Source of the DNA: Trichosphaerium sp. ATCC 40318
Taxonomy: Eukaryota > Protista > Tubulinea
NCBI GenBank assembly: GCA_038496445.1
Contig: JALMLS010000375.1
Coordinates: 1-52,651, forward strand
DNA: 52,651 bases
Reading direction: 5' to 3'
The position numbers and the translations under genes are program-made. Below, piece after piece: positions 1-32,500 of this stretch. The notes beneath the pieces are model-generated. The model did no database searches. It was not told where the DNA came from and was given only the letters and a program-made list of their open reading frames with translations. Within the stretch, counting starts at the first letter, position 1. Every line of letters starts with the position of its first letter.

Positions 1-49
1 AACTGCACCTTGGCTAGCGCAAGAACCTGGCAAATTTCCAGGTGCAATC

Positions 50-2351
50 ATGACACTTGTTTGGATATGTATATACGCCTAACATTTTCTGAACGCAGTT
101 TAATTGAGATTTATGCAGTGTGTGCACTAGTCGCCTTATCATATCAATCCACGGCTTGATTTTGGTCCCGTTACATTTAATCCACAGTTTGCGAGCAAAG
201 AAGGAGTTGTGGGTGTTGCATGGGTACAAGGTAATGTATCTGGCAGTAGAACTCTTCAATTTACACATGACAAAGCGTAAGTGGCTATATTCAACATGAC
301 AGAGTTTTTAATTTGTTTTAGACAATTCCCTGTAGTGCTGTTTAGCGAAGCCGATGTAGGACCAAGATTAGAAGATCCTACGCCTGAATTTGAGCGTGTT
401 TGACAATAGATGGGTTATTAACTACGCAATTTCGGACTCAATGGGTAACACTCGCGTTTTAGTTGCACGGTACGTTTTGAGCGGACAATGGAGATCTCCA
501 AGTTAACTTTATTTAAAGTTCTCCTACAAACAATGTAGGAGAATGGGAAACAATAGACATTACGCCAGTGTTGCCGTATACATCAAAGATATATACATTT
601 AAAACATTTGGGACGAAACTGTAATAACAGTTCAAAACGAAACACAATACAGAGTGGCTATCCTCACTCAGGACGCAGTGACGTTTGAATATAGTGAAAA
701 ACATCCAGTGATAGTACCATAGTACGATACAGTTTAGTCATTCGTTAACAGATCTGCTTTGCTTTTGTTTTGTTGTCTAAATGAATTCCTTTGTAGCGAT
801 GCATTTCTTATAGAAGTTTCCGATTCTAAGATAGCGTTGTTGTGTATAAAAGAAAAAAGCAACAATGATGTACCATCTGCCCTATTTATAAAGGATTTCG
901 GAGTGGATAGCATGTGGACTCAAAGTGAAGCGCCGGATGGGTACAAAACTAACAATCGATTATATGCAATGATAGTAAGGTAACCTCATTCCAGACAACC
1001 TCGTCTGTGCTTTCTTGTGAAACAAATCAGTCATCTAACACTGTGCAAAACAGGCCAATGTATGTTCTAATCGCTCACATTTGGGATATTGAAGTAGGGC
1101 CTAAAAATATAGAGCTAGTGCAAGTCTAATTAAAGCTTGTTGCTTTGTGTTTACCTATTTGTAGATTCTGGCGATATGATATGCTAACTGAAACAAGCAC
1201 AAGCTTATCAACGTCTTTTACAGCTCATCCTAATGGTATTTATTACGACCCAGCACTAACTTATCACAATGGAACAATTTACTTAATGACGCACAAAAAG
1301 TAAGGCTACATTGTCCAAAATGACAAGTTTTGATTGACTTGTAATAGAACTAAAGGGCAAGAAATACGACATCTTTACCTTGCTACAACTACAGACAACG
1401 GAGATACTTGGTTGGGACCAGATGCACTACCTAATCCTGAAAACATAATATCAAGGAGAAGCAGATATATTATACCAAGCGGAGATGAGTTGTTGTACAT
1501 TTCAAAAGGAGACATGAGTTACTACTTCCAAACAGAATATCAAACAGATACAACTACCTTAACTTTACGGGTATTAACTTCGAACCTGAACCAACTGCAT
1601 CCCCTACCACGAATACCCCTACAACAATGAGTCCTACAACAGTTGCACCAGTATTTCAACAGTGCGCGAATTGTTTACTAAAAAATACTAACAATTGACA
1701 CTAGTGAATGTAATGTACCTTTGTCTGTTGGTGAATGCAGAGATGGCGTATGGTTTATAAACAAAAGTGTTATTTTCCCAGCAGACGCTGTATTACCTGG
1801 AACTATCATTGTAAATGGTTAGTTAGTAGTAATGGTAAAGTGGTTTATTTATAACTATTTTAGGTACTCTGTTCGGTGATGCGTTCGAAGGCGATGAGAC
1901 TACAAATATTACTGTATTGGGGTGCATCGAATCTGATGATGTTAGCATAGACCTCTTTGTAAACAAATCAAGCTTGCCTGAGGGAACAACAGAGATCACA
2001 TTGCTATCTTGGAGCACTATTGTAGCACACCACGTTTTAACGTTGATATCTCAGGTTCTAGATGTATTAAACAAGAAACAAGACGCACGTGATTAATGCA
2101 AGTACTCTGAAAACTCTAACACTCCATTAGTATCTTCCCTTATTATTGTTTTTGGCACTGAAACATCCTGTGTGCTCAGTTTAGAGGGGGATAAGGACAT
2201 TTCAACAACTACTATTATATGGGCTTCAGTTGTTGGTGGTACTCTTCTCATTGTATTTTTAGTAGTCGTCATTGTTGTGTCTGTGAAACCTGCTTGTATA
2301 TTCCCATTTGCAAAACCTCCGAATAGAGTTTATGCCCAACACAATGCGTAA
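50..2351 (+). pseudogene. Frameshifted copy of Asp-box membrane protein A (or sequencing-error copy)
   Basis: Same gene as 16711-19011, but the first splice donor is altered (TATATACG vs TAGTACG) and there are indels near 150, 388, 610, 1569 and 2010. Confidence 0.75.
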
Positions 2352-2461
2352 ATAAAAAATGCACTGTTAATCCACATAACAAAGGTCAATCTGAGATCCC
2401 AACAACATGTCCATTGTTAGTCTAATATGTGCGGCTTTTTTATTTTTACAATGCATTTTGG

Positions 2462-3982
2462 TCATTCGTATGGTTGGGCTATGCGAGCTGACAGTGGCCT
2501 TTTTGGTGGCTTCGAATAAGGGAAAATACATTCTGGTCGTACAACGACAAGTATGACGCCAACGATAACAATGACAAGCACTATAAGTCCTACACCAATC
2601 AGTGTAAGAATTTAATAAACAAAACAAGCGACTTACCAACAACAGCAATCCAGACAATATGGGCACTATTTCCGATCCCACTGTCTTTGTCTTCACACTC
2701 ATCTCCATAAGAAAATACTGCAACGAGAGAAGAACCTTGACATTCAACAGTAAGTACAACATTCAGAAACAATGAACAATATAAAGTACCCTCAATCATT
2801 GACTTATCACAATTTGCCGAAATGAACTTGACGCTTAGGTCAGGTACATCACAATTTGATCTCCATGTCAAGAGCTTCTTGTTGCGGTTGTCGAGAGTAT
2901 CTGTCATGTTTGCAAATACGACCACATTTATTGTATTTGGTGATAAAATACAACCATATGTTGTTATATTGGATTGTTCATCAAGAATAAGTCTTGGTGT
3001 AAAAATATTTCCTAAGAATCAACGTAAGTAAAGCTGTTACAACGGTTTTCCAACGTGTACAATACATACCTGTTACTATTATATTACCAGATAGTATCCT
3101 GTCAGCGGGCAACGTACTGTTACCTTCTAATACCCATGTACTGCCTATACAAGTAGCTCCATTAAGAGCAAGGGAATTGCAAGAACTTGTATTGGGAGAT
3201 GTTGTCACATAAGTTGGCACATAGGTTGGTACAACTGCAGGTGCATCGGTTGGCGGTACATCTGTAGGTGCATATGTTGGCGTAGCTGTTGTTGGTGTAT
3301 CCGTTGTTGTCCCGTTTGCAGTTCTCTGCATGGTTGGTGCGGTCACTATTGTAGGTTGTTCGTATGGTGGAAGACTGGTCATCGAGGAGGTCCTTCAAGT
3401 TCATCTATTTGGATGGTATTTGACAGTATTGTTAAGGTGACATTACTATCGTCACCAGCGGCCAAAGTATATTATATCATCTCCATATAAACCAACGCCG
3501 TAAGAACGCATGTCCGTGGCTGATAGCACCAAGCTATCACCCCATGTATTGCCAGATCTGTGGAATTACACTACGAAGTAATCGTACATTTGAGCTGATT
3601 CTGAAAAACAACCAATTAGTACGATGATATTTTGTTATGACGTGCTTTTCGTGGTATAGCAATATAACTTTATTGTTAATATATGCCAATCTAGGATTAA
3701 AGTAGGAGTGCCCAAGTGGTGGTACTAGCTCGTTTTGTATTGCTACATCTGTATTGCCTGTTAAGTTATGTCTCCAGAATCTATCCAAAAAAAAAAGTGA
3801 GATAAATCAAACGAAAAACGAAACTTGATGTCTTTTAACAACTTACGCTATTATGGCCAGTGCCTCATGGTTAAACCCTATCAATAGTACATCATCTCTT
3901 CATATTTTGTGAGTGGGTATTATTTTACAAATGATTTGTAACGTACATGATTACCAAGTCAAACAAGCGATTAAAAGTGTAA
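2462..3982 (-). pseudogene. 5'-truncated, frameshifted copy of Asp-box membrane protein B
   Basis: Matches the 3' part of 19122-21588. The continuous reading frame 19697-20449 is broken here by indels at ~3383, 3465, 3551 and 3570. Confidence 0.75.
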
Positions 3983-5329
3983 TCCTACAATATCACATTT
4001 AGACGCATAATTAACAAGGTTGAGGCGTACTGTAATACTTGTAAGTGACGTGTGGATAATGTTTGGGTATTTCAGTTGCGTCATCTGCTGGTAATACATA
4101 TAGTTTTACAGTTCCCACAACAAGTGTACTAGGTGCTATACAATGTACCGCACTATTTTCGATGTCTAGTACCGCAGGAGAGGTAACAGCACCAAAAAGA
4201 CCTTAAAACAAAAATTAACTTTCCAAAAATGGGTTTACAAGCAGCGTACATATGTATCCAACACTACGCATATCTGAGCGTAAACTATCTGCTGTCACTG
4301 TAACATTGGTGCGTCCACTTATAGGCCCAAGTAGCGGTGATATTGACTTTACTCTCGGAACGCCTACAACATCGTCAAACCAACTTAAACTCCTATACAA
4401 ATTTTGCACAAAAAAAAAACTAATTCTGTTTGGGTAAAATGACATACGACGCCATGCGTGTACAATAATCTTGGTTGAAGATAAACAAATATCATTATTT
4501 TCCAGGTCAAAAAACATTTGATTAGAGGATCCATACGCATACTGCGGCCAACCTATCCGCGAAAATTAGATTCAAAAACGAGCCACACTGCATTATACCC
4601 AGAGGAGGTGTAAACATATTGTCAGACTCTACCATGGTTTCAGCAATACAGTTTGGACACCGTAAGCAGTTAAACTGGAAGTCAACTGGAAGCACGTGTT
4701 TCCTTTTAACCACAGACGTTTGCATGCTCTACAACAAAAATTACAATTGCAATAAATAAAATAAATATATCTCGCTGTTTTTTGACATTTACGCACAATA
4801 GTTAACAAGGCAGTCTCGCTCGGCAAATCACACTTGAAAACGCCCCTCAGAATTACTGTTATGCCCGCTACGCGATAACCCGGAGGTGTGGGATCGTCAA
4901 ATGATCTACAATAACGCTGAGCGTGGGATACCATCAAATGATTTGACAGGTGTAAAGACATTTTTTGAAGCAACAATCAAACACAAAACGCAAAACGCCA
5001 AGCAATTGTCTATCTCGCCAAAAACTAGAGTACGTACTTAGAGATGGGATTCCAGCCCGAGAAAGAGCAAGCATAATTGTTAACATGCATCAACCCAGTT
5101 GGGCACTCGCTACAATAACGTATGCCGGCCGTAGAGTTCCACAGCAGCGTTACATTGAACTTCTCGTAATCAATAGGTTCAGATGGAGCGACTTGAACAG
5201 GGAAGGTTACCATAAGTGTTTTAAAACCAATCGCATACCTGGTGGAGCTGTTATGAGGGCGTACACTGGCGGACAAACGCATAGAACAAATAACACCGCG
5301 AGCGAAGTGCGGTGCGATGTAAAAAACAT
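3983..5329 (-). CDS. Secreted/receptor-like Cys-rich protein with IPT/TIG domain, 3'-truncated at the duplication junction
   Basis: Signal peptide MFFTSHRTSLAVLFVLCVCPPVYA, Cys-rich exons, then IPT-like VPRVKSISPLLGPISGRTNVTVTA...FGAVTSPAVLDIENSAVHCIAPS. GT-AG introns; the frame ends just after the 3982 junction. Confidence 0.6.
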
Positions 5330-5802: not shown

Positions 5803-7816
5803 ATGAACCTCGCAGCTTCTCTAGTAGTATTCCTTTTGGTCTGCGCCTCCGCATACGCTGATGACGTCGATGAGAGTGACGTAGTTGTACTCACCTCAGA
5901 CAACTTCCAAAGCACCATCGATGAAAACGAATTTGTACTAGTAGAGTTCTACGTACGTAGTTGTTTCGTGTGCTAGAAACGAAAAGTTTTCTTTGTTGGA
6001 TAAACTTGTCTAACACTTCAACCAAAACAGGCCCCATGGTGTGGACACTGTAAACGTCTTACTCCTGAATACGCAAAGGCCGCCACAGCCTTGAAAGCTG
6101 ATGGTGTTATCCTCGCCAAAGTAGACGCAACACAAGAAAGCGAACTCGCACAATCTCACGGCGTCCGTGGGTACCCAACTCTCAAATTTTTCCGGTACGT
6201 TAAACGCGATCGCGGTTAGATCTCTTTCTAGCGACTAAAGCGGGTTTAGTGGCGGTAACGAAGCCGAGTACGACGGTCCTAGAGACGCTGAAGGTATCAC
6301 CAAGTGGGTACAAAAGAAAACAGGTCCACCAGCTACAGTTCTTGATGGACAAGAAGCCGTAACTGAGTTCGTCGAGAAAGCCGGTACTCAAGTTATCGGT
6401 GTTTTCGCTGAGGAAGACGACGACTGTACGTTTTGTTATTTCTCGTTTTGATTGTTTTTTTTTACCAAGCTCGTAAAGTCAGTTTAACACTAAAATTATT
6501 CCCACCTCGACCTTGTTGTGCTATCGCGACAGCGTTAAAGGTGATGAGTCATCATTTTTAACGTTTGACCAGATCTTTGTTTTTTTTTGTATTTTTACTT
6601 CTTCTCCTATCAATCTGGAAGTTTTACCTTCTTACTCTGTATGTAGCCCACAAAGCTTTCATTGAAGCCGCTCTCAAAAGCGAACTTGGTGATTTTGAAT
6701 TTGGTGTCGTATTCAAAGCTGGTTCCAAACCAACATACACCATTTACATTGACAACAAAGACCCTGTCATCGCTGCTGATCATCACGATGCTGATGCTCT
6801 CACTGAATGGATCTTGAACGAGGGATTCCCAGTTTTGGTACGTCACCTATTTCTAGGTTTTTTTTTTTTTTTTGAAACAATTGATATCATAAAAAATCAT
6901 TCAACTAAACCTGTGCTTAGGCTGAATTCGGTCAAGCTACCTTCCAACGTGCCCAAAAACTCTCCCTTCCTTTGGCTGCTCTCTTTGCTGCTGAAGATGA
7001 TGAGGGCGCACTCAAAATTGTTGAAGACATTGCCCTCGAATACAAGGGTAAAGTCATCTTCACACCTGCTCTTGGTGAATCCAACGAGAAAACCGCTGAA
7101 CAATGGGGTGCTTCCGGCACAAAATTCCCAACTATGGTCTTCATTGACTTGCGTCCTGAAGCTGCTGGTGGTACAAGACCAGTCGCTTTCAGAGAGGAAG
7201 ATGAGTTCACCGCCGAAACTGCTGCCACATACATCAAAGAAGTTATGGCTGGCGAATACTCTGGTACGCTTCTCGTTTGACGAGTTATTTTTTTTTTGCA
7301 TTTTTTTTGTTGTTAAATCTCGACCTCCTTCTTTCAAACCGCCTTGACACTAAATGTTATCCAACAGGTTTCAGAAAATCTGAGGCTGTACCAGAAGACA
7401 ATGACGGTCCTGTCCGTGTTATTGTAGGATCTGTATTCGAAGAAGAAGTTTTCCAAGCTGACAAAGATGTTTTTGTTGAGTTCTACGCACCATGGTGCGG
7501 ACACTGCAAACGTCTCGCTCCAACTTGGGAAAAACTTGGTGAAGCTCTCGCTGAAACTGAAGGTGTTGTCATCGCTAAGGTTGATGCTACCGCCAATGGT
7601 TACCCTGATGAGATTGATGTCCGTGGATTCCCTACTCTCATGTACTTCAAAGCTGGCGAAACAGAACCAATCCCATTCAACGGCGACCGTGCTTTTGACG
7701 ACATTGCTGCTTTCATTGCCTCCACCACCGATCAAACTCTTCCAGAAGGTTTCGGAGAACCAACTGAGACTGAAGAAGAAGTTGAGGAAGACGAAGAGGG
7801 CCATGACGAGCTCTAA
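5803..7816 (+). CDS. PDI: Protein disulfide-isomerase (a-b-b'-a'), ER resident
   Basis: Signal peptide [19 protein letters not shown]; two [13 protein letters not shown] thioredoxin sites (the first split by intron 5953-6030); acidic tail ending HDEL*; 5 GT-AG introns. Confidence 0.96.
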
Positions 7817-8001: not shown

Positions 8002-9734
8002 TTACAATAAATCCCTTCCCAAAGCACTGAGAATAAGCTCCATACCCATAGCTACTGTTGTGTTTACAGGTGCGCCCTCATAACTACCAGTAGCACCTAA
8101 TTTTAAAAGCGTTACTTGCAGTGCTAACTAAAATAGAAAAATCGTACATCTTAGCATTTGTGGTGAAATGGTTGGGTTAATCTCAGAGATGTCCATCGAG
8201 CGTAAAAGTTTGGTTTTTGCAATCTCTTCAAGTACGAATCTACTCTCTCTGTATGTCAAGCCTCCAAGTACCTTAGTACCTACCCAATGTATTAAGTAAA
8301 ACCAACTATAGTCAACATGGCTTTGAGACATTGTTTTTTTTTGTCAAATGAGTGAACACTTCGCTACATGACTGTCACAGTGTCGTACCGGTACCAGGAG
8401 CAACTAAAGGATCGATTGCTGACATGTCGAATATAACGTGAATTTCTTTATCTCTTCCTGGGTTAATAGCATCCAAAGCTAAATCCAAAACCTTTACAAT
8501 TAATTAACACCATAAAATGTTTTTTTTTTTTGCTATTTCAATTTGGTACCTTAGCTATACCGTATTTGTCGATGTGGTGCATGCTAAATACATGTGTGTT
8601 CTTTGCCTTGAGTTGCTGTTTTTCTACAGCATCTAAATCACGCACACCAATCATGGCCTAATTTTTTTTGTTAGTTTGTCACGACATACAAAAAAAAAGA
8701 AAAAAACCCATACAATACTATCATTATCTAGACCTGCGTATTCCTTCATAAAAGAAAATCCTGGTAGACCAGAGGCATCAAATGACTTCAATAGAGCGCC
8801 ACCTACCATACCATGCATAAATCTACACTCAAAGTAAATACGTAGGTAATCTTTGACTGAGGAAGTAAGATGAATAGTACCCTGTTTTTGAAGTGTCAGG
8901 AGTGTGCATATCTGCAAATGCAGATATCCATACTACACACATACTTGGATTAGCTTCGCGTAAGCTATAAGAAATAGGTCAGAAGCAGCGCTTGAAAAAA
9001 AAAACCAAATTTTTCTTTGTGCATTGATTAAAAAATTGATTACATATGTAACTACGCACGCAGATACAGTGCCAATACTAATGGTGTGGTCACCGCCAAT
9101 AGTTAAAACGAAATTGTCTTTGTTGCCGTCTTTACGCGCTAACTTGACTCTATCGTATATTTGCTTACAGGCATCGCCCACAGCTTGTGCATGTTGTACT
9201 TTTGACGCTCCTCTTGTCTGTTGTGGAGTAAATTAGTGTAAAGAACAAAAAACCTAAACTGTTCGTTTTTCTGTTTACAAAAATTAGAAAGTTTTTCTGT
9301 ACACGTTCGAATTGGTAAAAAAGTCATACACCGGTTATTGACGCATTGTTTGCGCTCTCAACTTGAATATTACAGTCGTGTGTCACAGGCCAGGCCATTT
9401 CTTGCAGGCGGTCTTTTATACCCAATTGTCTCATGACTTTTGGTCCTAATTCGACGCCTTGATCGCCAGTTAATATGTGTGAACTACAGGAAGGTGCAAA
9501 ATGGCGACATGAAGACATAGAGTGGTATTTTTCCGCTTTTCAGAATTGTTTGGTTACCTATCATTCCTTGCCCAAGAGATATTGGTGCACCAATGATAGT
9601 GCATGTTCTCTTGGTTCCAAAAACTTTGGAGACGCCGGAGGTTCTAAAAAGGTTAGTTATATGGTCCAGTATCATCAGCAAAGCTACTAGAAAGCGAATT
9701 TTTGAAAAGCGGTCATACGGTGTAACTTGGCCAT
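8002..9734 (-). CDS. Arginase/ureohydrolase-family protein with degenerate Mn-binding motifs
   Basis: Spliced motifs IIGAPISLGQ-GVELGP, TIGGDHTISIG, WISAFADMHTP, MHGM, IGVRDLD, FDMSAIDP, GGLTYRE, SEINP, ending SALGRDLL*. Confidence 0.9.
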
Positions 9735-10159: not shown

Positions 10160-13100
10160 ATGGAGGTTGAGGTACATTTATAGCCTAAGATTGATTGTTC
10201 TGTACTTGGAGTTAAATTTAACTAAACCACTATCGAAGGGCGAATGGAGCGGCGTTACTGCCGGCGGTTGCGTCAACCACCCTACCTGGGTGTTTAACCC
10301 AAAGTATTTGTTTACTATACGACACAATCGCACTGTGACTTTAAAGATCCAGCAAGCTAAATCAGGAACTGCAATTGGATTCTACTTGTTCAAGGCTAAC
10401 GGTTGGTGCACTAAATTAAAGGCTATTTAAAAACTAATTTAATACAAAAACGCAGAAAATGGATTACTGGACCTGCATGACACAGAAACTAATTTAGTCA
10501 CTAAGAGCGGTTTCAAAACGTACGTAGGAAGTTGTCAAACTCCCGCTTTAGAAAACTCAGGAAAAAAAAAATCATACTCGCAGTACTATGCGCCATACTG
10601 CGTCTAACTCAAATTAGACGCAAGACAATCACTTGCACAGTAGATTTACAAAGAAATATAAAGTACATCTTAATGCCTTGTACTTTTGCACCTGGCGTTG
10701 CATCTTCCTACAAACTCATCTGCGACTACGGTAAAGGTAGTATGGTACCATTACCTAAAGAAAATCAATGGGAATACACTGAGGTTGAGGTACACTTTTT
10801 TTTTCGGAATTGTGCGAGCGATGGCTGGCACCTTGTTTTATTTTCCTACTGAATACTTGTTTAGGGCGAATGGCGTGATAACACGGCAGGAGGATGCAAA
10901 AATAACAAGTCCTTCAAGTACAATCCGCAGGTACAGCATACTAATTGATTGGCTGGTTTTATAACCTGTTTTTATCTTACATGAGTTTTTTTTTTAGTTC
11001 CATTTCTTGGTTGAGGAAGATGTAGACTGTACAGTCATTCTGTACAAAAAAGAAGACGATGAAGAAGAGAGTGACGAGGAAGAAAACTCAGATTACTTGG
11101 GTGTATATGTAGCAAATGCTCCTGGTACATAAATTATCCTTTTGTAGGAGCTACAACGTATTAACCTATAATTTAGATGAAAATGATTTGACATCATTTC
11201 CTAGCAAATCACTCGCTGTCACTCATGAATTTGTACAAGATGAAAGCGAAGAAAGTACGCGGTTGGCAACGCCTTCGAGTAATTATATTTATCGTCCTTA
11301 AGCTGCCCGCACATTCAAGCTATCGCCTGGACATTATAGCTTTGTTCCTTGTACTTTCAAGAGTGGCACAGAGGCTTCATTCGGCTTAATGGTGTTCACA
11401 ACAGCACCAATCAAATACCTTAAAAAGGATAAGCAAGCTGCACTCGCAGGTGCCGCTACAGAGGCCCTAGAAGTACGTATTGTTATTCTTTCGGTAAACC
11501 TATTTTAATTCCCTTTAGGAACTTGTTGCTGAAAAGAAACAACACTTAAAAACACAGCAAAAACTCACAGAGGCTGATGGCAAATTGGGTGAAGCCAAGG
11601 AAACTATTGAAGAACTTAATGTACTTTTTTGAGGATTTCTTTTTGTTGTTCTTAACAAGCTCTAGCAAACAATTGAGCTACTCAAAGATCAGCAGGCACA
11701 ATTGGCCGGAAACACTGGATCAGGTGATAGCAGCGGTAAGCTAAACGCAAAAACAGTAGGCGCATTGAACACAACGATGAAAGAGATTGTGACGGTACAT
11801 CAAACATGTTTATTTGTGATGTTGTGAAAACTCAGTGTTGTTAAGGGTATGCAACAAAATGCTAGAAAAGCTACTGTCAATGAATGGAAGGCAGAGAGGA
11901 AGAATTTTGCTGATTTCTTGCTTGCTCTCAGACACAGCTTTTTGGAAGATGCCGAAGAGGTAGTTGAAGAAAAACCTACAATCTGGAAGGAAACAAAGAC
12001 TGCTGAAGGTAGAGTGTACTACTACAACGTCATCACTCGCGAAACATCTTGGAAACCACCGGTCGCTATTCCTTTAGTGCCAGAAACAGAAGACGAAGAT
12101 CCAAAGGAAGAACAAAAGTACCATTTACCCCTTTTTTTACCAACTAATTTTCACAAAGGAAACCTGAATCTACCAGCCAAGCTCTTGTAGTTAAAAAGAA
12201 AAATCAACCGGGCAGTGTTGGAGATGGTGTGAAACAAAAAACAGTCCCTGTTACAGGTAACAAAAGGTTTTTGGAATGTCCAATATTTACGGGTGATGCT
12301 TAGGAAAGGAGATGCGTATAAAGGGCTCATTGACAGGCAGAAGTGCTGGTGGTTGTATGAACTATCCTACTTGGCGTTGGAACCCTCAAATATTTGTCAG
12401 TACCCCATCCGACACACGCATGACCGTAACGTTCGTATTTTTTTGCTTAAATGGTTTACTGGCTAACTCTCTTTCAACTTTAGTTTGAGCCAACCAGCAT
12501 CTAAGAATTTGCAAGATATATCATTCTATGTATTACACGAGGATAGACGTATGTCTGGTAGGCGTTTCGTAATGGCCAAAGATATAGAGGAGTCTACTAT
12601 CGCAAAGGGCGCCTTCAGACCCCAAGAGTCTTGCTCACTTGATGTTAACTTGCCAGGGTCTAAGCATCCTTATATCGTAATGCCTTGCACATTTGCACCA
12701 AACAAAGTACGCTCTTTCTTCAATCAATCACGTTTGTAAATCATATCTTTTAACTTCGTTGTACAGGAAGTTGACTATACACTTGATATTAAATCACAAG
12801 ATCCTTTAACTGTACAAGAAATTTGTAGAGAGGAACATGAATGGTTTACTGAGACTGTTGAGGTTTGCTGTCTTTCTTTTAAACACTCGTTGCTTATGAG
12901 GACTTCTTTTAGAGCGAATGGAAAGATGATACTGCTGCTGGATGTGCAAACCATGCTACATTCCTCAATAATCCTCAATATCAAGTTACAATCAAAGAAA
13001 AGTGCTGGCTACATATTCTTCTATTGCAAACCGAAGATGAGGACTTTGAAGAAGCCATAAACGTGTATATCCTTAAAGGAGACGGTACAATATCAGATAG

Positions 13101-16044
13101 GCTCACCCTTGGTTTAATTTTTGGATAGGTCTTGTATCCAAGCTCACAAAGTTTGTCAAGAGTGATATTGTATCTAAGGGGTCATTCAACCGACCTGATG
13201 AAGGCAAGTCGGTTATTTTTATCTTTTTTTATGCTGTGTTGTGCTCACAATCTACACCATAGTGAGTCTGTCTGTTGAACTTCTACCAGGACAATATGTC
13301 TTACTACCTTGCACTTTTGACCCTAAGCACCCAGCTAAATATACAATGCATACTTTCAGTAATGAGCAATTCAACATTCGCGCTCTTGGTAAAGCTGACG
13401 AGATTACGCTTAAAGTATGTTTGGCCACATTTTATGGTTTCTTAAATTCTTTCTAGGGAGAATGGAAAGGAGAGACAGCTGCTGGTTGTATTACATCCCC
13501 AGCCACCTTGTGCGTTAAACAATCAAACTAAAGGACTTATGTTGTGTAGCCGTAATAACACTCAATATCTCTTGCATGTCAAGGAAGAGATTGAGCTTGA
13601 TATTCGTTTAAGACAACCTGATGAACAAAAGAGTAAAGTGTCAATTGGTCAATACGTTTTCAAAGGAAAAGGTATACTTGCCTGTTTAAACTAGCCCTGT
13701 TGCTAAGTTAAGTATTAGGTAAACGCAAGTTCATCTTTAAAAAGAGCGCTAGAGTTGCCAAGTCTGGCTTTGGTAAAGTTCGTGATGGTAAGGGTTTTTA
13801 CAATACAAAGAAGTTATGTCAACATTAATGAAACTACACAGCTATGATAACAAAGACATTCGAACCTGGCCACTATGTCATTGTGCCTTGCACATATCGC
13901 GGTATGTGAAAAAAAGCTTCTGTTGACTGAATAGTTAATCTAAGTATTATTTAGTTGGTAAAGAGGGAGAGTATGATTTGTCCCTGTTTTCTCAGGATCC
14001 AAAATTCAAAGACAAGGTCACGTTGGTGTCTGAGAGTGATGATGACTTCTCTCGATTTGTATTCGATAGCGAATGGAAGGGTATGTAGAACCGTTTGTTA
14101 ATTATTGTTGTGCTAATTTCTTGTCAAGCCATATCCGCTGGAGGTTGTTTGAATCATGCCTCTTGGAGAAACAATCCACAGTATCAAATCAAAGTCGAAA
14201 AAGACAAATCCTTGGTTTACATGCTTCTTACTCAACCTGAAACAGAAGACCATTTCCCTTACAGCATGGGTTTCTACGTTGTAGCTGCACCAGGCAAGTA
14301 ATAATAAGCTTAAAAATATGTGTTATTGATGGTAGTGGTTAGGCGATGGTGGTAGAACTGTAGATGATATTAATCCAAAAGAAATTGTGACAAAAGCAAA
14401 GTTCAGCAAAAAGAACGAGAGTAAGCACTTATGCATTCAAAAGTTGTTTCTAAACAATCTTTTTCAGTTGTTGTTGAATGGGAAGCTGAGCCAGGAACGT
14501 ACAATGTCATTCCTTGCACCTTTGAACCAAAGAAAGAGACTATCTTCCAATTCAAGATATTCTCAGATGACATTGCAGGCACTACAGTAAAGAACCTGGA
14601 TGCTAAGCGTATTAGCTTTGATGTACGTCCAATGGTCAAAGGCAAGTAACTAACCAAGTTGATATAGGGCGAGTGGAACGCTTCTAATGCTGGTGGTTGT
14701 CCTAATGATCAAGGTGCAGCAAGGTGGCTCACTAACCCACGTTACTTCTTGTCTGTGAAGCAACCTGTGCAAATTGCAATGGTTTTGGAGCAATCGCCAG
14801 AGAAAGACGTACCTGAGGAAGATTTGCTTGCTGTTGGTTTCTATGTCACTAGAGCTGATAGTACGATATAATTCTTAAATTATTAAGGTCGTAATAATTG
14901 TATAGGTGATGGTACACCTCTGACACGTGGTCTTGATGATCTTATTGCCAAAGCCGATTTTGAAAAGATGAACAATGGTGAGAGTTTTTATTTTTCACAT
15001 GTATGTTAACAATTGCCTAGTAAGCGCTGTATTTGAGTTACAGCCAAGCGAGGATGGAACACCGTATGTGGTCGTACCATCTACATTCTTCGCGGATAGG
15101 GAAGCTAGCTTCAAGCTATCGCTCATTACAAACCCTGAAGTGCGTGTCAATTCATATATTGTTAAAACTGTTCAATGTAAAATACTCACAGTTGGCTAGA
15201 ATGCGGACTACATTGAGTTCTCCACTCAACCAATTGGTATGGACGTCCACGAATACCAACGTAAGATGCAAGAAGGGGTATTCCAAAACTACCTCCAAAG
15301 AAGAGCTGATAGAGCAGCGGATGAAATCATTCAACTCGTAGAAGCTGCAGTCAGCATGGTATTGCTTTTTTTTTATACCTCTTTATTGTAGTTTAAAGGA
15401 ATACTCATTATACTATGTACATAGGGTATCTCAAGTTTAACACCAACAGCCACAGAGCTCAGAAAGAACTTGAGAAAGTTGCAAATGGAACTAGCGACTG
15501 TGAAGATTTCGATTGCACCGCTTGATGATGACGATCTAGAGCTGTTAGCTGGTGGAGGTACTTTTCGCTATTTATTTAGTTGAATTTTATTGCTCACTTC
15601 TTTTAGCGCCTGCGCCACCACCACCGCCTCCTATTGGCGGAAAGCAAGTTGCAAAGGTAGATACAGATGAATTGATGCTTGGTAAAGCTATTCTTAGGTA
15701 AGATAGTGCCAAAGTTTGCTATTGTTTTGCTTATTGTTTCAATCTTTAGAAAAGTGGATGCTACTGAACGGTTACCTCCAAAGCGTGATCCAACATCAGA
15801 GATGATGGCCCTAATTTCCAAGGGAAAGATCAAGTTGAAGCCTGCCAAAGAGCGTGTACTTGCCGAGAAAAAAGAGGATCCAAAAGAAAAAGAATCATTT
15901 TTCAATGTTGCCAAAATTATGGCAAGAAGAAAAGTACGTAACTTTAACGTAGCACATTGTCCTTATGGGTTCTAGGCAATCGAGATGGATCAAGAAGATG
16001 ACGATGATGACGATTGGAGTGATGACGATGATGACTGGGAATAA
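10160..16044 (+). CDS. Seven calpain domain-III (C2L) repeats + coiled coil + WW + poly-Pro + C-terminal WH2-central-acidic (WCA) module
   Basis: Seven GEW..(T/S)AGGC.N....NPQY / Y.(V/L)(M/V)PCTF units starting ~10240, 10866, 12320, 12913, 13457, 14070 and 14668. WW: [27 protein letters not shown]. Then [39 protein letters not shown] and [16 protein letters not shown]. About 30 introns spliced in frame by eye. Confidence 0.85.
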
Positions 16045-16710
16045 CTATTTGCTAGAGACCAAAAGTAAAGCTTTTCTGTGCCAAATATTTATGCTTCCTG
16101 ATTGTACTGTGATGAAGATGTACAGTAAGTGCTCCTTGGTTGTCTAAAATAAAGTTTAAAAGTCTAAACGAACTACTCACACAGTTGTGTTTTAAAAGGC
16201 CACTCCCGATTTGTAAGGATACACTGAATGATACCTTGCAAATTGCATGAGGCTAACTTTGTCACAAACAATCTTCTTTCTGTTGTTTACAATGAGTTCA
16301 AACAAGATACAAAGGTCATCACACAATACGTCCGGCGATGAAAGCATCGGCAAGACCTAGAAATATTGTGAGCTGGAACAGCCTACAATAACCTGTGTGG
16401 GTGATAGTACCTAGAGCAGAACGCCAACACATCTTGGAGTAAAACTGTGGATCGGGAAAAATAAGGTTTTAGCGGTTATTTCGGGTAACTTTTAAACATT
16501 TGATGGCATCCAGGAAGACCAAACAAACCCTAATTAGCAGGAGAATACCCAAACGGCTCTTACATTGGCCATTTTACATCAAAACGTTTTTGTTTGTTCA
16601 TCCTACCGATTTGGATTTACAAAACGGGAAGGTGGCTATAATAAAGGCTAAAGTTTCCTTTAACTGCACCTTGGCTAGCGCAAGAACCTGGCAAATTTCC
16701 AGGTGCAATC

Positions 16711-19011
16711 ATGACACTTGTTTGGATATGTAGTACGCCTAACATTTTCTGAACGCAGTTTAATTGAGATTTATGCAGTGTGTGCACTAGTCGCCTTATC
16801 ATATCAATCACGGCTTGATTTTGGTCCCGTTACATTTAATCCACAGTTTGCGAGCAAAGAAGGAGTTGTGGGTGTTGCATGGGTACAAGGTAATGTATCT
16901 GGCAGTAGAACTCTTCAATTTACACATGACAAAGCGTAAGTGGCTATATTCAACATGACAGAGTTTTAATTTGTTTTAGACAATTCCCTGTAGTGCTGTT
17001 TAGCGAAGCCGATGTAGGACCAAGATTAGAAGATCCTACGCCTGAATTGAGCGTGTTTGACAATAGATGGGTTATTAACTACGCAATTTCGGACTCAATG
17101 GGTAACACTCGCGTTTTAGTTGCACGGTACGTTTTGAGCGGACAATGGAGATCTCCAAGTTAACTTTATTTAAAGTTCTCCTACAAACAATGTAGGAGAA
17201 TGGGAAACAATAGACATTACGCCAGTGTTGCCGTATACATCAAAGATATATACATTTAAAACATTTGGGGACGAAACTGTAATAACAGTTCAAAACGAAA
17301 CACAATACAGAGTGGCTATCCTCACTCAGGACGCAGTGACGTTTGAATATAGTGAAAAACATCCAGTGATAGTACCATAGTACGATACAGTTTAGTCATT
17401 CGTTAACAGATCTGCTTTGCTTTTGTTTTGTTGTCTAAATGAATTCCTTTGTAGCGATGCATTTCTTATAGAAGTTTCCGATTCTAAGATAGCGTTGTTG
17501 TGTATAAAAGAAAAAAGCAACAATGATGTACCATCTGCCCTATTTATAAAGGATTTCGGAGTGGATAGCATGTGGACTCAAAGTGAAGCGCCGGATGGGT
17601 ACAAAACTAACAATCGATTATATGCAATGATAGTAAGGTAACCTCATTCCAGACAACCTCGTCTGTGCTTTCTTGTGAAACAAATCAGTCATCTAACACT
17701 GTGCAAAACAGGCCAATGTATGTTCTAATCGCTCACATTTGGGATATTGAAGTAGGGCCTAAAAATATAGAGCTAGTGCAAGTCTAATTAAAGCTTGTTG
17801 CTTTGTGTTTACCTATTTGTAGATTCTGGCGATATGATATGCTAACTGAAACAAGCACAAGCTTATCAACGTCTTTTACAGCTCATCCTAATGGTATTTA
17901 TTACGACCCAGCACTAACTTATCACAATGGAACAATTTACTTAATGACGCACAAAAAGTAAGGCTACATTGTCCAAAATGACAAGTTTTGATTGACTTGT
18001 AATAGAACTAAAGGGCAAGAAATACGACATCTTTACCTTGCTACAACTACAGACAACGGAGATACTTGGTTGGGACCAGATGCACTACCTAATCCTGAAA
18101 ACATAATATCAAGGAGAAGCAGATATATTATACCAAGCGGAGATGAGTTGTTGTACATTTCAAAAGGAGACATGAGTTACTACTTCCAAACAGAATATCA
18201 AACAGATACAACTACCTTAACTTTACCGGGTATTAACTTCGAACCTGAACCAACTGCATCCCCTACCACGAATACCCCTACAACAATGAGTCCTACAACA
18301 GTTGCACCAGTATTTCAACAGTGCGCGAATTGTTTACTAAGAAATACTAACAATTGACACTAGTGAATGTAATGTACCTTTGTCTGTTGGTGAATGCAGA
18401 GATGGCGTATGGTTTATAAACAAAAGTGTTATTTTCCCAGCAGACGCTGTATTACCTGGAACTATCATTGTAAATGGTTAGTTAGTAGTAATGGTAAAGT
18501 GGTTTATTTATAACTATTTTAGGTACTCTGTTCGGTGATGCGTTCGAAGGCGATGAGACTACAAATATTACTGTATTGGGGTGCATCGAATCTGATGATG
18601 TTAGCATAGACCTCTTTGTAAACAAATCAAGCTTGCCTGAGGGAACAACAGAGATCACATTGCTATCTTGGGAGCACTATTGTAGCACACCACGTTTTAA
18701 CGTTGATATCTCAGGTTCTAGATGTATTAAACAAGAAACAAGACGCACGTGATTAATGCAAGTACTCTGAAAACTCTAACACTCCATTAGTATCTTCCCT
18801 TATTATTGTTTTTGGCACTGAAACATCCTGTGTGCTCAGTTTAGAGGGGGATAAGGACATTTCAACAACTACTATTATATGGGCTTCAGTTGTTGGTGGT
18901 ACTCTTCTCATTGTATTTTTAGTAGTCGTCATTGTTGTGTCTGTGAAACCTGCTTGTATATTCCCATTTGCAAAACCTCCGAATAGAGTTTATGCCCAAC
19001 ACAATGCGTAA
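16711..19011 (+). CDS. Type I membrane protein A: Asp-box (BNR) propeller-like ectodomain, PT linker, Cys-rich domain, TM helix
   Basis: Spliced signal peptide MTLVWICMCALVALSYQS; Asp-box TTDNGDTW; PTASPTTNTPTT linker; TM IIWASVVGGTLLIVFLVVVIVV; tail KPACIFPFAKPP...HNA*. Confidence 0.75.
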
Positions 19012-19121
19012 ATAAAAAATGCACTGTTAATCCACATAACAAAGGTCAATCTGAGATCCCAACAACATGTCCATTGTTAGTCTAATATGTGCGGCTTTTT
19101 TATTTTTACAATGCATTTTGG

Positions 19122-21588
19122 TCATTCGTATGGTTGGGCTATGCGAGCTGACAGTGGCCTTTTTGGTGGCTTCGAATAAGGGAAAATACATTCTGGTCGT
19201 ACAACGACAAGTATGACGCCAACGATAACAATGACAAGCACTATAAGTCCTACACCAATCAGTGTAAGAATTTAATAAACAAAACAAGCGACTTACCAAC
19301 AACAGCAATCCAGACAATATGGGCACTATTTCCGATCCCACTGTCTTTGTCTTCACACTCATCTCCATAAGAAAATACTGCAACGAGAGAAGAACCTTGA
19401 CATTCAACAGTAAGTACAACATTCAGAAACAATGAACAATATAAAGTACCCTCAATCATTGACTTATCACAATTTGCCGAAATGAACTTGACGCTTAGGT
19501 CAGGTACATCACAATTTGATCTCCATGTCAAGAGCTTCTTGTTGCGGTTGTCGAGAGTATCTGTCATGTTTGCAAATACGACCACATTTATTGTATTTGG
19601 TGATAAAATACAACCATATGTTGTTATATTGGATTGTTCATCAAGAATAAGTCTTGGTGTAAAAATATTTCCTAAGAATCAACGTAAGTAAAGCTGTTAC
19701 AACGGTTTCCAACGTGTACAATACATACCTGTTACTATTATATTACCAGATAGTATCCTGTCAGCGGGCAACGTACTGTTACCTTCTAATACCCATGTAC
19801 TGCCTATACAAGTAGCTCCATTAAGAGCAAGGGAATTGCAAGAACTTGTATTGGGAGATGTTGTCACATAAGTTGGCACATAGGTTGGTACAACTGCAGG
19901 TGCATCGGTTGGCGGTACATCTGTAGGTGCATATGTTGGCGTAGCTGTTGTTGGTGTATCCGTTGTTGTCCCGTTTGCAGTTCTCTGCATGGTTGGTGCG
20001 GTCACTATTGTAGGTTGTTCGTATGGTGGAAGACTGGTCATCGGAGGAGGTCCTTCAAGTTCATCTATTTGGATGGTATTTGACAGTATTGTTAAGGTGA
20101 CATTACTATCGTCACCAGCGGCCAAGTATATTATATCATCTCCATATAAACCAACGCCGTAAGAACGCATGTCCGTGGCTGATAGCACCAAGCTATCACC
20201 CCATGTATTGCCCAGATCTGTGGAATTACACGTACGAAGTAATCGTACATTTGAGCTGATTCTGAAAAACAACCAATTAGTACGATGATATTTTGTTATG
20301 ACGTGCTTTTCGTGGTATAGCAATATAACTTTATTGTTAATATATGCCAATCTAGGATTAAAGTAGGAGTGCCCAAGTGGTGGTACTAGCTCGTTTTGTA
20401 TTGCTACATCTGTATTGCCTGTTAAGTTATGTCTCCAGAATCTATCCAAAAAAAAAAGTGAGATAAATCAAACGAAAAACGAAACTTGATGTCTTTTAAC
20501 AACTTACGCTATTATGGCCAGTGCCTCATGGTTAAACCCTATCAATAGTACATCATCTCTTCATATTTTGTGAGTGGGTATTATTTTACAAATGATTTGT
20601 AACGTACATGATTACCAAGTCAAACAAGCGATTAAAAGTGTAACCCACAAATGGAGTTAAAAATGTTGACCATTCACTGACGTTTGTTCCGAGTTTTCGT
20701 GTTTCCAGACGTGCTGTAAACGTGCCCTTTGAATGCACCAACACAATGACAGTATCATTTGTAGCATAAAATAAGACCGATGGTCTACAATTGAAAAGGG
20801 TTAGCATGAACCACGGAAATTAAGAAAAAAGCAAAAAAATGTTGTTACTAAATTGAGTCATTCGTACTCCACTCCTGTTGAATAACTTAATATTTCCTTG
20901 TCTGTGTAAGTTCCACTATCTTCTTGTATATGATTCACGCTTGTTGTCGTATCATCGTGAAAACCAACGAATGTCTCATTACCAAATGTTTTTATGCTTC
21001 TAGGCTCTTGATTGTAGCTTGTTTGTGTAAGTTTCACTGTTGACCATATTTCGCCGTCTGCAGACCTAAAAAAAGCAAAAAAGTTGAGAATTTCACGAAT
21101 ATCCTAAAAGACGTACTTTGCCAAATATACGTCGTATACGCCAATTGATTCTATGGCGTAGTTTATAACCCATTCGCCACCGTATGAGCATAGTGATAGA
21201 TATTTAATTGTATCGGGCGCAGTATTGTTGTACAGTATTAACGTAGCACTAGAATTGGCGTTTAGCAATGATTCAAGAGCAATACAAATCATTTTAACAA
21301 CCAAAACGCTAGATAAAACTACAACAACTCCAATTCGCGTTAAAACCGTTGCTCACCTGTTTGTAGCTCCAAATTTCACAAACGAGCCATTATTTGTACT
21401 TTGTACCCAAGCCAAGCCAAATTCTCCATTTAAAGTAGCGTACAAAGGGCGCATTGTGAGATTTCCTGAAATAGTGTATTCGTTTGCATACGTGAACGAA
21501 ATAGCAACTTTCGGCGTGTTAGGAAACAAAACAGATGGGAATATCACTACGTACGTAATATTATCAATGTGAGGTGTATTGCCCACAT
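19122..21588 (-). CDS. Type I membrane protein B, paralog of A
   Basis: Spliced signal peptide MWAIHLTLIILLAISFTYA; motifs shared with A (G.AWVQ, WVINYAI, FWR); Asp-boxes SADGEIW and STDLGNTW; PT linker; TM; tail RPECIFPYSKPP...PYE*. Confidence 0.75.
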
Positions 21589-29595: not shown

Positions 29596-32500
29596 ATGTC
29601 TAGTACAGCGCTATTCTATGCGCTTATAATAGTAGCGCTACTGTCTTATTATCAAACAGACGCTACAAGGATACCTCGTACGTCCCTACTGTATACTATA
29701 TACCTTCTCTACGCGAATCAAGCGTATCGATAGGCAATCCTGAACTCTACGCCGGTGGTGTGCCGGCACGCTTTTTATTTTCTCGTGGAAAGTCATCCTT
29801 TCATTTGTCTTATACCTTATGTAGTATCCAACCACACCCGAGTGACGTACACTTGGCACGATGCAAGCAAGATAGACTTTACTAATTTTACACGTCCCTC
29901 GATGGAAGCTCAAAAGGCCAAAAGGTAACGTTTTAGCGAAACGGGGAAGGCTGCAGTGTCGCAGTTTTACTTTGGCTTTTTGATTGGTTTGTTATCTTTT
30001 TTTATTTATCTATTACGATAGAGCAGCGAACGCAGAGTCTAGATTGATTATAACTACAGTTATCACTGATGAAGCTCAGGAAGTAAGTTAGTAAAAAAAA
30101 AATATCTGGTTAGGTCAGATCTCCACCTTTTTTGGTTAAAACGTTTTAATACACGTGATAAATGCCACCAAAAAGGGGCTGCTCATTTCTGAAATTTCTA
30201 TCTCTCGTTTTTTTCAGAATTCAGAGTTAAAAAACTTACTGGGTTTATCTTATAGCGTGAAGATATCGTAAGCGCTTTTAATAACGCTCTGGATGTTTGG
30301 GTACACATAAATACATTTAAAGATGCTTCTTTTTTTTTTTTCAAAACGATTTTTTTTTTGATTTACAATATCGTTCTATTGCTGACCCACGTGATTAAAG
30401 AGAAGTTATATTTTTGACGAGACTGCTTTGGAGATTCATTTGCATGTAGCAACAATACCAGAACTTGCAGTAACAGATCTTGTGAGGTTATATAATTTCG
30501 GAACTGTCAGAATGACGTATGTGAAGTAATTTGATTCTTTTTATTTTCTACTTTGTAATTTCTCCACTTTTTTTTTAATGCGAATGTTAACCAAGTACTT
30601 ACTTCTGGTGATTTTTTAGATCTCAGCTGAATTTCAAACTTGCTACAACCCAACTCTTTTTCGGTACTCTATTCGATAGACCAGAGTATGCCTTGGATGA
30701 AGGATATCCTACAGTTGTTGATCACGGTCCTTTGAAGTCAATGATAAAGGTAAAAAAAAAACCGGAAGTTCCCACTCACAAAATTAACAAAAAAACACGA
30801 CTTGTTATCTCTTATGTACTTGTAGAATATCTTTCAAGAAACAGATATGTTTGATGAACCAAATGGACCTCGCGATGCTACAATAACAGTATCAAACAGA
30901 AGAAATATTGACTGGGACATCTCTGATGGAATAACTCCTGTTCGTTTTGACACATTTCATTTTTTTCTCCCTTCATTTTTGTTGATTGACCTTATTTTTT
31001 GAACACAGGGTTTACTTGACGGACACGCAATTATGGTTCACGAATTAGCACGTGTTTTCGGATTTTCAAGCGATATTGGAAGGAGTGAGCGTTTTTTTTG
31101 TTCATTTTTTTGACTATTGAAATGTCCGCCAGCTAATTTCTTTCTAGTGACTGAGTTCATTAATTCCCCAGGTGACATACCTTTTGGAGTTCAACCTACT
31201 ATACTTGATTATTTACGCTTCCCTACACCAACTACTAGTGTCTTTAGAGGACGTAGTTTGGAGCTAGGTACTAAATAATAATCAACTAAACAATCACCGT
31301 ATACTAATTCATCAAAAGATGTACCTGCCTTCTTTATAAGTCCTTTAGTAAGAATACCAACTGTAGAATATTCTTCTGTACTCGGTCAACAGGACAGTTG
31401 GGCAGATGAGAGCCTTGGTACTGTTTTTTTAAAAGAAAAAAAAGACACTTAACATAGCTGACTTTTACGTTTAGGTATTATCGCTCCATTAAACGAACTT
31501 ACCCCAGAATCTCGTATTGGTATTACCATAACGGATATTCTTGTCATAGATACTCTTGGATGGTTTATAAATGGTACGTGAATCGAACCGTTTAGGAAAT
31601 TTTAAATTGAAACTCACAACTAAAAAATAGCTGTTGGATTACCTTGTCCATATGTTTCATATACTGATAGAGACTTTGCAACTATTGGTGATGTTATTGG
31701 TGTACGTGGATATTACTTTTTCGAACAAGTACGATGTCTGTACGGTGGATTTGCAGGCCTAATTATTGGAGATGCACGAGTAATCAGTGATTCATACGTT
31801 GTATGTTTTGACTTCATTTTTACTGATGGAAATGCCTCGTCTATCGTCTATCACTAGTTAACTTGATTGTTTAGGAATGTGTTGTACCTGTATTTCCTTC
31901 AAACAGAAGATTAACTGGTATGGAAATTAGTGCTAATGGTGGACAACAAAGTAACTTTTTTGGAAATATTCAAATATCACCAGTACGACAATCAATTTCT
32001 CGCTTGTTACTCATTCATATTCATAGATATCACCAAATCCAACAGCTGCACCTCCTACGCAAGCCCCAACAATGGCATTTACACCTCCACCGACTACAGT
32101 ACCACCAACGGTTGCTCCCACGATTGCCCCTACAACACAGCGTCCGACAGTAGCACCAACACCACAGCCAACACCAGCCCCAACTAACCCTCCTACACTA
32201 CCTCCAACAAGAGCACCAACAGTTGCACCAACCCCACAGCCAACACCAGCCCCAACTAACCCTCCTACGCTTCCTCCAACAAGAGCACCAACAGTTGCGC
32301 CAACACCACAGCCAACACCAGCCCCAACTAACCCTCCTACGCTTCCTCCAACAAGAGCACCAACAGTTGCACCAACACCACAACCAACACCAGCCCCAAC
32401 TAACCCCCCTACACTACCTCCAACAAGAGCACCAACAGTTGCACCAACACCACAGCCAACGCCAGCCCCAACTAACCCTCCTACACTACCTCCAACAAGA

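Follow-up and report, generated by a model that had tools for sequence, protein, structure and literature searches.

Calpain domain III arrays joined to a WAVE-like WCA tail in an amoebozoan protein family: candidate nucleation-promoting factors of the Arp2/3 complex

Nucleation-promoting factors (NPFs) with a WCA tail (WH2 motif, C helix and acidic end) decide where and when cells build branched actin, and few N-terminal architectures are known for them, namely those of WASP, WAVE, WASH, WHAMM/JMY and WHIMP and of the proposed WAML and WAWH. A gene on the + strand of contig JALMLS010000375.1 of Trichosphaerium sp. ATCC 40318 (the whole stretch analysed, 52,651 nucleotides long, is called the window here) raises the question of whether a further architecture exists: between positions 10160 and 16044 it joins seven calpain domain III (C2L) repeats to a tail of this type. 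Our results demonstrate that the gene is real and expressed. From its sequence features, the protein is most likely a class I NPF of the Arp2/3 complex (probability roughly 0.7), and it belongs to a family that is a probable new subfamily of WCA-type NPFs.

The domains of the encoded protein follow the order two C2L, a heptad-rich helix, WW, five C2L, a helical region, poly-proline, a degenerate WH2, a clear WH2, a WAVE-like C helix and an acidic tail with two tryptophans. The features and the evidence for each are listed here; the local profile hidden Markov model (HMM) was built from the repeats themselves.

10239-10789, + strand: C2L (Calpain_III) repeat 1, residues 5-137; Pfam Calpain_III 1.4e-5 on exon 2, local HMM.
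10865-11472, + strand: C2L repeat 2, residues 138-276, with a long acidic loop insertion; residues 277-284 lead into the helix; Pfam pieces 1.2e-3 and 2.1e-5, local HMM.
11519-11794, + strand: heptad-rich helical segment (candidate coiled coil), residues 285-361; heptad heuristic, motif common to the inserts of orthologues.
11975-12061, + strand: WW domain within exon 11 (11846-12117); Pfam WW E 1.2e-10.
12304-12862, + strand: C2L repeat 3, exon block of residues 487-633; Pfam pieces, 912-nucleotide (nt) RNA contig.
12913-13414, + strand: C2L repeat 4, residues 634-766, with the GC-AG intron 13204-13262; Pfam 3.9e-6 and 7.5e-5, local HMM.
13457-14067, + strand: C2L repeat 5, residues 767-905, the most degenerate repeat; local HMM, RNA junctions 13414/13457, 13509/13550 and 13901/13955.
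14068-14622, + strand: C2L repeat 6, residues 906-1042, with the GC-AG intron 14294-14342; Pfam 1.3e-4 and 1e-4, RNA junction.
14668-15139, + strand: C2L repeat 7, exon block of residues 1043-1170; Pfam 1.8e-5, invariant family columns, RNA contig.
15200-15557, + strand: conserved helical region, residues 1171-1268, between the last C2L domain and the poly-proline; helices in AlphaFold2 models of orthologues.
15607-15697, + strand: poly-proline (A-P-A-P6) and first, degenerate WH2-like motif, whose LRKV ends across the exon 32/33 junction; sequence, family profile aligning it to the first WH2 of N-WASP.
15750-15933, + strand: main WH2 ([16 protein letters not shown]), linker and C helix ([11 protein letters not shown]...); phmmer, alignment, profile against PDB.
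15976-16044, + strand: end of the C helix (AIE), acidic tract with two tryptophans, and stop codon 16042-16044; sequence, RNA junction 15933/15976 with the 3' untranslated region on the same contig.

The tail carries the functional assignment. It shows the sequence features of class I NPFs, that is, a WH2/V motif, a C helix with a conserved hydrophobic face and arginine, an acidic end with tryptophan, and a proline-rich region upstream. The poly-proline consists of six consecutive prolines (residues 1271-1276), and the C helix [14 protein letters not shown] stands upstream of an acidic tract in which the two tryptophans lie at positions -2 and -9 from the C-terminus. Poly-proline and C-terminus agree letter for letter with what had been read from the DNA alone, before any database search; that sequence-only reading correctly recognised one clear WH2 but overlooked the second, degenerate WH2-like motif ending in LRKV. 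At nucleotides 16013-16019, RNA contigs filed under a second organism label carry net 3-nt indels in the GAT/GAC tract encoding acidic residues, which suggests in-frame variation of acidic-tail length between strains, or contigs from paralogues.

When a profile of the family tails was compared with all PDB chain sequences, the only significant matches were the VCA regions of N-WASP and WAVE1, a result that supports the WASP/WAVE type of module first proposed for this tail. The N-WASP matches include 6uhc_H, the VCA in a cryo-EM structure of Arp2/3 (E 1.7e-7), 7t5q and 2vcp (about 3e-5) and also 3m3n, and the WAVE1 matches are 3p8c, 7usc and 4n78 (4e-5 to 1e-4). The alignments extend over WH2, C and A, and the degenerate first WH2 pairs with the first V motif of N-WASP. 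In this profile the family WH2 pattern, E-M-L-x-x-I-x-x-G-x-x-x-L-K, aligns with the WH2 motifs of N-WASP and WAVE1, and the C-helix pattern, F-N-x-x-K-I-x-A-R-R-x-A-I-E, with their C regions. The spliced tail of the window protein, scored against a profile of the 18 orthologous tails with itself left out, reaches 70.8 bits from profile position 6 onwards, compared with 10.1 for the best of 1000 shuffles. In addition, the tail of the orthologue P0002 matches an environmental WAVE protein (labelled "WAS protein family member 1") at 3.3e-7.

Across an alignment of 19 tails, no variation is seen in the leucine of the LK motif, one proline and the C-helix RR, and the WH2 glycine, the phenylalanine before the C helix and the terminal tryptophan are near-invariant. 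Over 22 orthologues the majority-residue fraction is highest in the C helix (0.66), followed by WH2 (0.58) and the C2L domains (0.56-0.58), while the poly-proline linker is variable; by this measure the constraint on the tail is no weaker than that on the folded domains. Activation of Arp2/3 is taken as the most likely function because the tail has every sequence feature of a class I NPF together with constraint on those features.

A tail of this composition might instead bind actin monomers, and perhaps Arp2/3, without activating branching: its tandem WH2 motifs could drive nucleation or sequestration of actin, a capacity known from Spire, Cordon-bleu and JMY, or it could tether or compete for Arp2/3. 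Such a role would fit the two tandem WH2-like motifs, the WH2 repeats of Spire and Cordon-bleu that follow N-WASP and WAVE1 among the PDB matches, and the ESM Atlas look-alikes of exon 33, which fall in WH2, thymosin, Cobl and SCAR clusters with scores of 0.6-0.84 that count as leads only. However, conservation within the tail peaks in the C helix, which bears the RR, and the terminal acidic tryptophan is near-invariant; Arp2/3-independent WH2 nucleators need neither, and the significant profile alignments run beyond WH2 through C and A. We therefore regard a purely non-branching role as unlikely.

The tail also led to the family. A phmmer search with the 61-residue WH2-C exon against 1.8 billion representative sequences gave a single match, an environmental fragment of 254 residues (P0001; E 3e-5, 55% identity), of which a 493-residue cluster mate contains two C2L domains followed by the same tail. 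Searches from P0002, Arcella P0004 and Balamuthia P0023 then extended the family to about 25 proteins, the longest of 1389 residues, each with 4-7 Calpain_III domains and a C-terminus consisting of poly-proline, WH2, C helix and acidic tryptophan, the poly-proline standing at the same place in every full-length member. The named sources are Arcella intermedia, Nolandella sp., Rhizamoeba saxonica, Echinamoeba exundans, Balamuthia mandrillaris and Stereomyxa ramosa, placed by the NCBI taxonomy in Tubulinea and Discosea with one unplaced amoebozoan; the other members are environmental or come from Logan contigs. Database labels are either "hypothetical protein" or "Peptidase C2 calpain domain-containing protein".

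In long members, 100-150 residues containing a conserved helix separate two C2L domains from five more, after which come the helical region, poly-proline and the tail; shorter ones begin at the helix and have five C2L domains. In the eight orthologues scanned, Pfam finds no family but Calpain_III, in 4-7 stretches each (E 1e-63 to 1e-105). Searches of the protein collections did not return the full-length window protein itself; the nearest matches were P0002, at 48% identity, and P0048, at 44% in the last four domains. Look-alikes of the orthologue P0058 in the ESM Atlas were generic Calpain_III clusters only, so the family has no large cluster of its own there.

Arrays of 4-5 C2L domains occur in other amoebozoan proteins linked to a protein kinase (P0024-P0037; a Trichosphaerium transcriptome entry and DICPUDRAFT_93560 of Dictyostelium purpureum are among the kinase-linked arrays) or to a RhoGEF domain (P0039 and P0061), and P0062-P0064 also belong among these kinase- or RhoGEF-joined proteins. 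No description of C2L-array kinases or RhoGEFs was found, and the Dictyostelium kinome paper makes no mention of calpain. A maximum-likelihood tree was built from the last four C2L domains in 37 rows, from which redundant cluster mates and fragments lacking four long domains were left out, and was midpoint-rooted for drawing only. In this tree the kinase-linked arrays split from the rest at 100/99, and all WCA-tailed proteins form one group (88/89) with the RhoGEF-linked arrays as sister. The rows labelled "other" inside the WCA group are WCA proteins missed by the pattern (P0009, P0011) and a truncated isoform (P0014).

Since homologous arrays carry other effectors, the protein could be mainly a C2L scaffold or signalling adaptor whose WCA-like end is minor or vestigial and has little activity, and some isoforms or fragments, P0014 for example, indeed lack the tail. 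Against this, the tail is present in every full-length member of the clade, and the constraint on it, at least equal to that on the folded domains, is unlike that on a vestige; a mere scaffold is in our view quite improbable.

Exon translations of repeats 1, 2, 3, 4, 6 and 7 contain Pfam Calpain_III pieces (PF01067) above or near the gathering score, and the local HMM delimits seven domains (residues 5-137, 138-276, 492-633, 634-766, 767-905, 906-1042 and 1043-1186) with pairwise identities of 24-35%. Common landmarks are G-E-W...A-G-G-C-x-N...N-P-Q-Y, I-G-F-Y-V and P-G-x-Y-x-x-V-P-C-T-F, and the loop SDG..P.T...DLIAKA.F of repeat 7 is conserved family-wide. No Pfam match to Peptidase_C2/CysPc was found anywhere in the protein, which thus lacks the core with the Cys-His-Asn triad that defines calpains (peptidase family C2); seven C2L repeats without a protease core are what had been proposed. 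AlphaFold2 was run with family alignments on two orthologues, the C-terminal 493 residues of P0002 and the full-length P0010 (1030 residues). The C2L sandwiches are predicted confidently (pLDDT, the per-residue confidence, about 90), and their best Foldseek matches in the PDB are 1kfu, 1qxp and 2qfe (m-calpain, mu-like calpain and the C2L of calpain-7), with a TM score of 0.75 to the calpain-7 C2L. After the last C2L domain the models place a helical hairpin (residues 293-330 and 333-355 in P0002, 822-896 in P0010); this region (15200-15557) matches no Pfam family above the gathering cut-off, DUF6918 remaining sub-threshold (E 0.015, exon 30). The poly-proline is predicted to be disordered, and short helices of low confidence are placed where WH2 and C lie.

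Between repeats 2 and 3 lie the heptad-rich helix, the WW domain and a charged linker, in agreement with the coiled coil and WW domain placed there in the sequence-only reading. The heptad score, a crude heuristic, peaks at residues 294-341, and in P0010 AlphaFold2 predicts one helix of 45 residues where the five-domain block begins, the same helix that is found in the inserts of orthologues. The WW domain (PF00397) scores 41.6 bits at E 1.2e-10 against a cut-off of 26.9, has two tryptophans about 22 residues apart with the second followed by x-x-Pro, and lies in an exon that occurs in RNA contigs, joined there to exon 12. It is absent in all orthologues examined (by pattern search, and in eight also by Pfam) and is a lineage-specific addition. 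Autoinhibition through binding of the WW domain to the protein's own poly-proline, which had been suggested as a possibility, does not hold up as the core regulatory principle of the family because the orthologues lack the domain. Autoinhibition by docking of the tail was also considered, and the orthologue models show no sign of it, a weak negative.

Transcript evidence comes from three public RNA runs holding near-identical contigs, which confirm at least 17 of the 33 splice junctions. The most informative contig (1184 nt, 0 mismatches) runs from 14575 to beyond 16080, into the 3' untranslated region, through eight junctions (14622/14668, 14860/14906, 14977/15021, 15139/15200, 15358/15425, 15557/15607, 15697/15750 and 15933/15976), so that one spliced molecule contains the end of repeat 6, the whole of repeat 7, the helical region, the poly-proline and the entire WCA tail. 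The possibility that the WCA exons (15607-16044) belong to a separate transcript fails because this contig joins them to repeats 6 and 7 and to the 3' untranslated region. A second contig, of 912 nt, leads from the end of the WW exon 11 through exons 12-16 (repeats 3-4) and confirms the weak donor GTTCGT at 12431. Further junctions confirmed by RNA are 13414/13457, 13509/13550, 13901/13955, 14293/14343 (GC-AG) and 14420/14468; an RNA junction at 14291/14341, with 4 ambiguous letters, is equivalent to 14293/14343. At the 5' end, the junction 10401/10456 is supported by the loose end of an RNA contig, and a 239-nt contig probably reaches about 57 nt upstream of 10237, across exon 1, judging from the depth table and the unlisted remainder of the contig. 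The single transcript proposed for 10160-16044 is thus substantiated from the end of repeat 6 to the 3' untranslated region and from the WW exon to repeats 3-4, but no listed contig spans the full 4.1-kb coding sequence. That gap, which includes exons 3-10, is what could favour a wrong fusion of a C2L-array gene with a small neighbouring WCA gene, an artefact that is hardly credible given the two spliced contigs and the transcriptome orthologues and intronless genomic ORF that share the architecture end to end, and that is already refuted for the C-terminal half. The ORF in question, P0016, is a single open reading frame (ORF) of 3741 nt on a 19.9-kb genomic contig; because it is intronless, splicing or assembly artefacts are excluded as the origin of the architecture.

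The gene model was assembled by hand from open segments joined by GT/GC..AG sites and reading phase, and was then corrected with the RNA. It contains 34 exons and encodes 1381 residues without an internal stop, and the coding sequence matches exactly the extent first given for it, 10160-16044. The exons, placed by open frame and splice sites, are as follows.

10160-10171, + strand: start codon and first coding exon, encoding MEVE; in-frame TAA at 10148, orthologue starts.
Exons 1-9, + strand: 10160-10171, 10239-10401, 10456-10519, 10618-10789, 10865-10930, 10998-11124, 11177-11254, 11303-11472, 11519-11620.
Exons 10-18, + strand: 11666-11794, 11846-12117, 12159-12256, 12304-12430, 12484-12706, 12767-12862, 12913-13084, 13129-13203, 13263-13414.
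Exons 19-27, + strand: 13457-13509, 13550-13671, 13719-13787, 13842-13901, 13955-14080, 14129-14293, 14343-14420, 14468-14622, 14668-14860.
Exons 28-34, + strand: 14906-14977, 15021-15139, 15200-15358, 15425-15557, 15607-15697, 15750-15933, 15976-16044.

The 33 introns measure 41-98 nt, and two are of the GC-AG type (13204-13262 and 14294-14342, donor G|GCAAGT), the second of them confirmed by RNA. For these introns, numbers 17 and 24, a GT donor was tried and gave the wrong phase, and GC-AG fits. Many of the gene's other donors read GTAC.., and its acceptors are mostly TAG. The junction between exons 19 and 20, initially drawn at 13484/13534, had to be moved, as RNA shows exon 19 ending at 13509 and exon 20 starting at 13550. 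At the 5' end, the in-frame TAA lies 12 nt before the ATG, and the orthologues begin M-S/T-E-V-K-G-S-W and pass straight into the first C2L domain, as does the window protein; exons 1-8 align with the orthologues without gaps at the junctions. The start at 10160 was retained because the 5' neighbour is an arginase-family gene on the opposite strand (8936-9181, - strand, and upstream; Pfam Arginase 1.8e-5), arranged head-to-head with the NPF gene.

Several results weigh against the assignment as an NPF or against parts of it. The Pfam WH2 model gives no match at E <=1 on exon 33 of the window and matches only 3 of the 19 family tails, so that of the domains expected by the sequence-only reading, Pfam returns Calpain_III and WW but not WH2; phmmer with exon 33 alone finds no match among solved structures, and the first WH2-like motif is short and degenerate. 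The WCA assignment rests on the family profile because the Pfam model is weak here. No contig among those listed covers exons 3-10 (10456-11794), for which the open frame, the splice signals, two complete C2L domains and the gap-free alignment of orthologues at the junctions speak. The search from Balamuthia P0023, in which 8000 word-sharing candidates were scored, gave no member from Dictyostelium or Acanthamoeba, which would point to a family that is not universal in Amoebozoa. The family consensus shows no conservation of the acidic C2L loops. Lastly, in the AlphaFold2 models the tail is not docked with confidence on the folded body (WH2 and C helices with pLDDT below about 65), and nothing in them suggests an autoinhibited conformation, a weak negative drawn without coordinates or the predicted aligned error.

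As an NPF, the protein would be a cytosolic multidomain protein in which the C2L array serves as the targeting or regulatory part in place of WH1, WHD or WAHD. In the WASP-family mechanism, poly-proline recruits profilin-actin, WH2 delivers actin, and CA binds both sites of Arp2/3. By analogy, the poly-proline would recruit profilin-actin, the WH2 motifs would deliver actin monomers, and the C helix with the acidic tryptophan would set off branch nucleation by binding at the Arp2-ARPC1 and Arp3 sites. Three further steps are less supported. Dimerisation strongly raises the potency of known NPFs, as Arp2/3 binds two CA segments, and the conserved helix before the five-domain block may dimerise the protein so that two CA segments reach both sites. 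The C2L array probably localises or gates the protein, and may do so at membranes or on a partner with the help of Ca2+ or phospholipid, the binding of which has been reported for calpain domain III; we rate the Ca2+/phospholipid part low because the acidic loops are not conserved. In the lineage of the window, the added WW domain could recruit a proline-rich ligand. Taken further, and only tentatively, the family may consist of Rho-GTPase-independent Arp2/3 activators of lobose amoebae, in which C2L arrays, dimerised through a coiled coil, would respond to Ca2+/phospholipid or to a partner at the cortex and set free a V(V)CA tail that is constitutively exposed, the C2L array being a portable cortical targeting module that is also used by the sister C2L-RhoGEF and C2L-kinase proteins.

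Among known systems, SCAR/WAVE (WAVE1-3 and Dictyostelium SCAR) shares the poly-proline followed by WH2, C helix and acidic tryptophan end. The C helix of the window protein is closest to that of WAVE (RR-x-A-I/V-E), and the alignment with WAVE1 (3p8c/4n78) runs through WH2, C and A. In contrast, the window protein begins with a C2L domain, its N-terminal 1170 residues are C2L, helix and WW, it has one clear WH2 and a degenerate second one, and Pfam finds no WAVE homology (SCAR) domain in its exons or in the eight orthologues; without this domain, it is not evident how the protein could join the pentameric WAVE regulatory complex or come under Rac control. N-WASP provides the best PDB match of the tail profile (6uhc_H) and, like the window protein, has two V motifs before CA and poly-proline upstream, whereas WH1/EVH1, basic region and CRIB/GBD of WASP and N-WASP find no Pfam match in the exons or orthologues. 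In N-WASP, autoinhibition is achieved by the GBD, which clamps the C helix, and it has no counterpart here because CRIB/GBD is missing. WASH, WHAMM and JMY differ in their WAHD1 or WMD/N-terminal domains, to which Pfam gives no match, and in their long coiled coils, compared with a helix of only about 45 residues. The expectation that a WASP/WAVE-type WCA is here attached to an N-terminus unlike WH1, WHD or WAHD thus finds support, since orthologues carry the same architecture in single ORFs and no such Pfam matches were obtained.

A precedent for WCA on non-canonical N-termini in restricted lineages, several of them amoebae, is provided by WAML, WAWH and WHIMP. Kollmar et al. 2012 (PMC3298513) proposed WAML, described there as having an IMD domain, and WAWH, a WASP without WH1, as WCA families restricted to certain lineages, and WHIMP (Kabrawala 2020, cited in PMC10330494) is an animal relative of WAVE. 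The C2L domains have the sequence family (Pfam Calpain_III) and fold of domain III of m-calpain and of the tandem C2L of calpain-7, but the window protein has seven tandem copies and neither CysPc core nor EF-hand domain. The calpain-family survey of Zhao et al. 2012 (PMC3563603) does not mention WH2 or actin, and proteins like that of the window would have been excluded from it because CysPc was required. The amoebozoan C2L-kinase and C2L-RhoGEF proteins (e.g. DICPUDRAFT_93560; P0061) have homologous arrays of 4-5 C2L domains, with a protein kinase or DH domain as effector instead of poly-proline-WH2-C-A.

The supposition that this architecture had no known description finds support: a full-text literature search found no paper joining calpain domain III with WCA, the WASP-family survey of Kollmar et al. 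2012 (PMC3298513) contains 0 occurrences of calpain, and a 2023 review lists WASP, N-WASP, WAVE1-3, WASH, WHAMM, JMY and WHIMP only and does not mention calpain. Within the limits of this search the C2L-WCA family is undescribed; it is classed as a probable subfamily of WCA-type NPFs and not as a new kind of system. If the proposed function is right, the combination of C2L array and WCA tail adds a new input route to Arp2/3, and the calpain C2L domain gains a role outside proteases. The organisms concerned are amoebae, whose crawling and phagocytosis depend most on branched actin, and members occur in the pathogen Balamuthia and in many free-living amoebae.

Elsewhere in the window, a 4-kb direct duplication (1-3990 and 16662-20650; 99.6% identity, period 16661 nt) brackets the NPF gene; it may be a genuine segmental repeat or have arisen through duplication in the assembly. 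At 7277-7816 on the + strand lies the last exon of a PDI-like protein with a thioredoxin fold and a terminal HDEL (Pfam Thioredoxin 1.8e-26). The region 32011-33710 is GC-rich (0.50-0.54) and strongly skewed and contains repeats with a 72-nt period, with a proline/threonine-rich, mucin-like ORF of 360 amino acids on the + strand. Two intronless genes with leucine-rich repeats (LRR_6) follow on the + strand, at 34732-35949 and 36375-37511, and Pfam recognises an F-box-like domain in the first only. Further internal duplications pair 38866-39761 with 40733-41632 (84% identity) and 45022-45843 with 51006-51824 (inverted, 78%).

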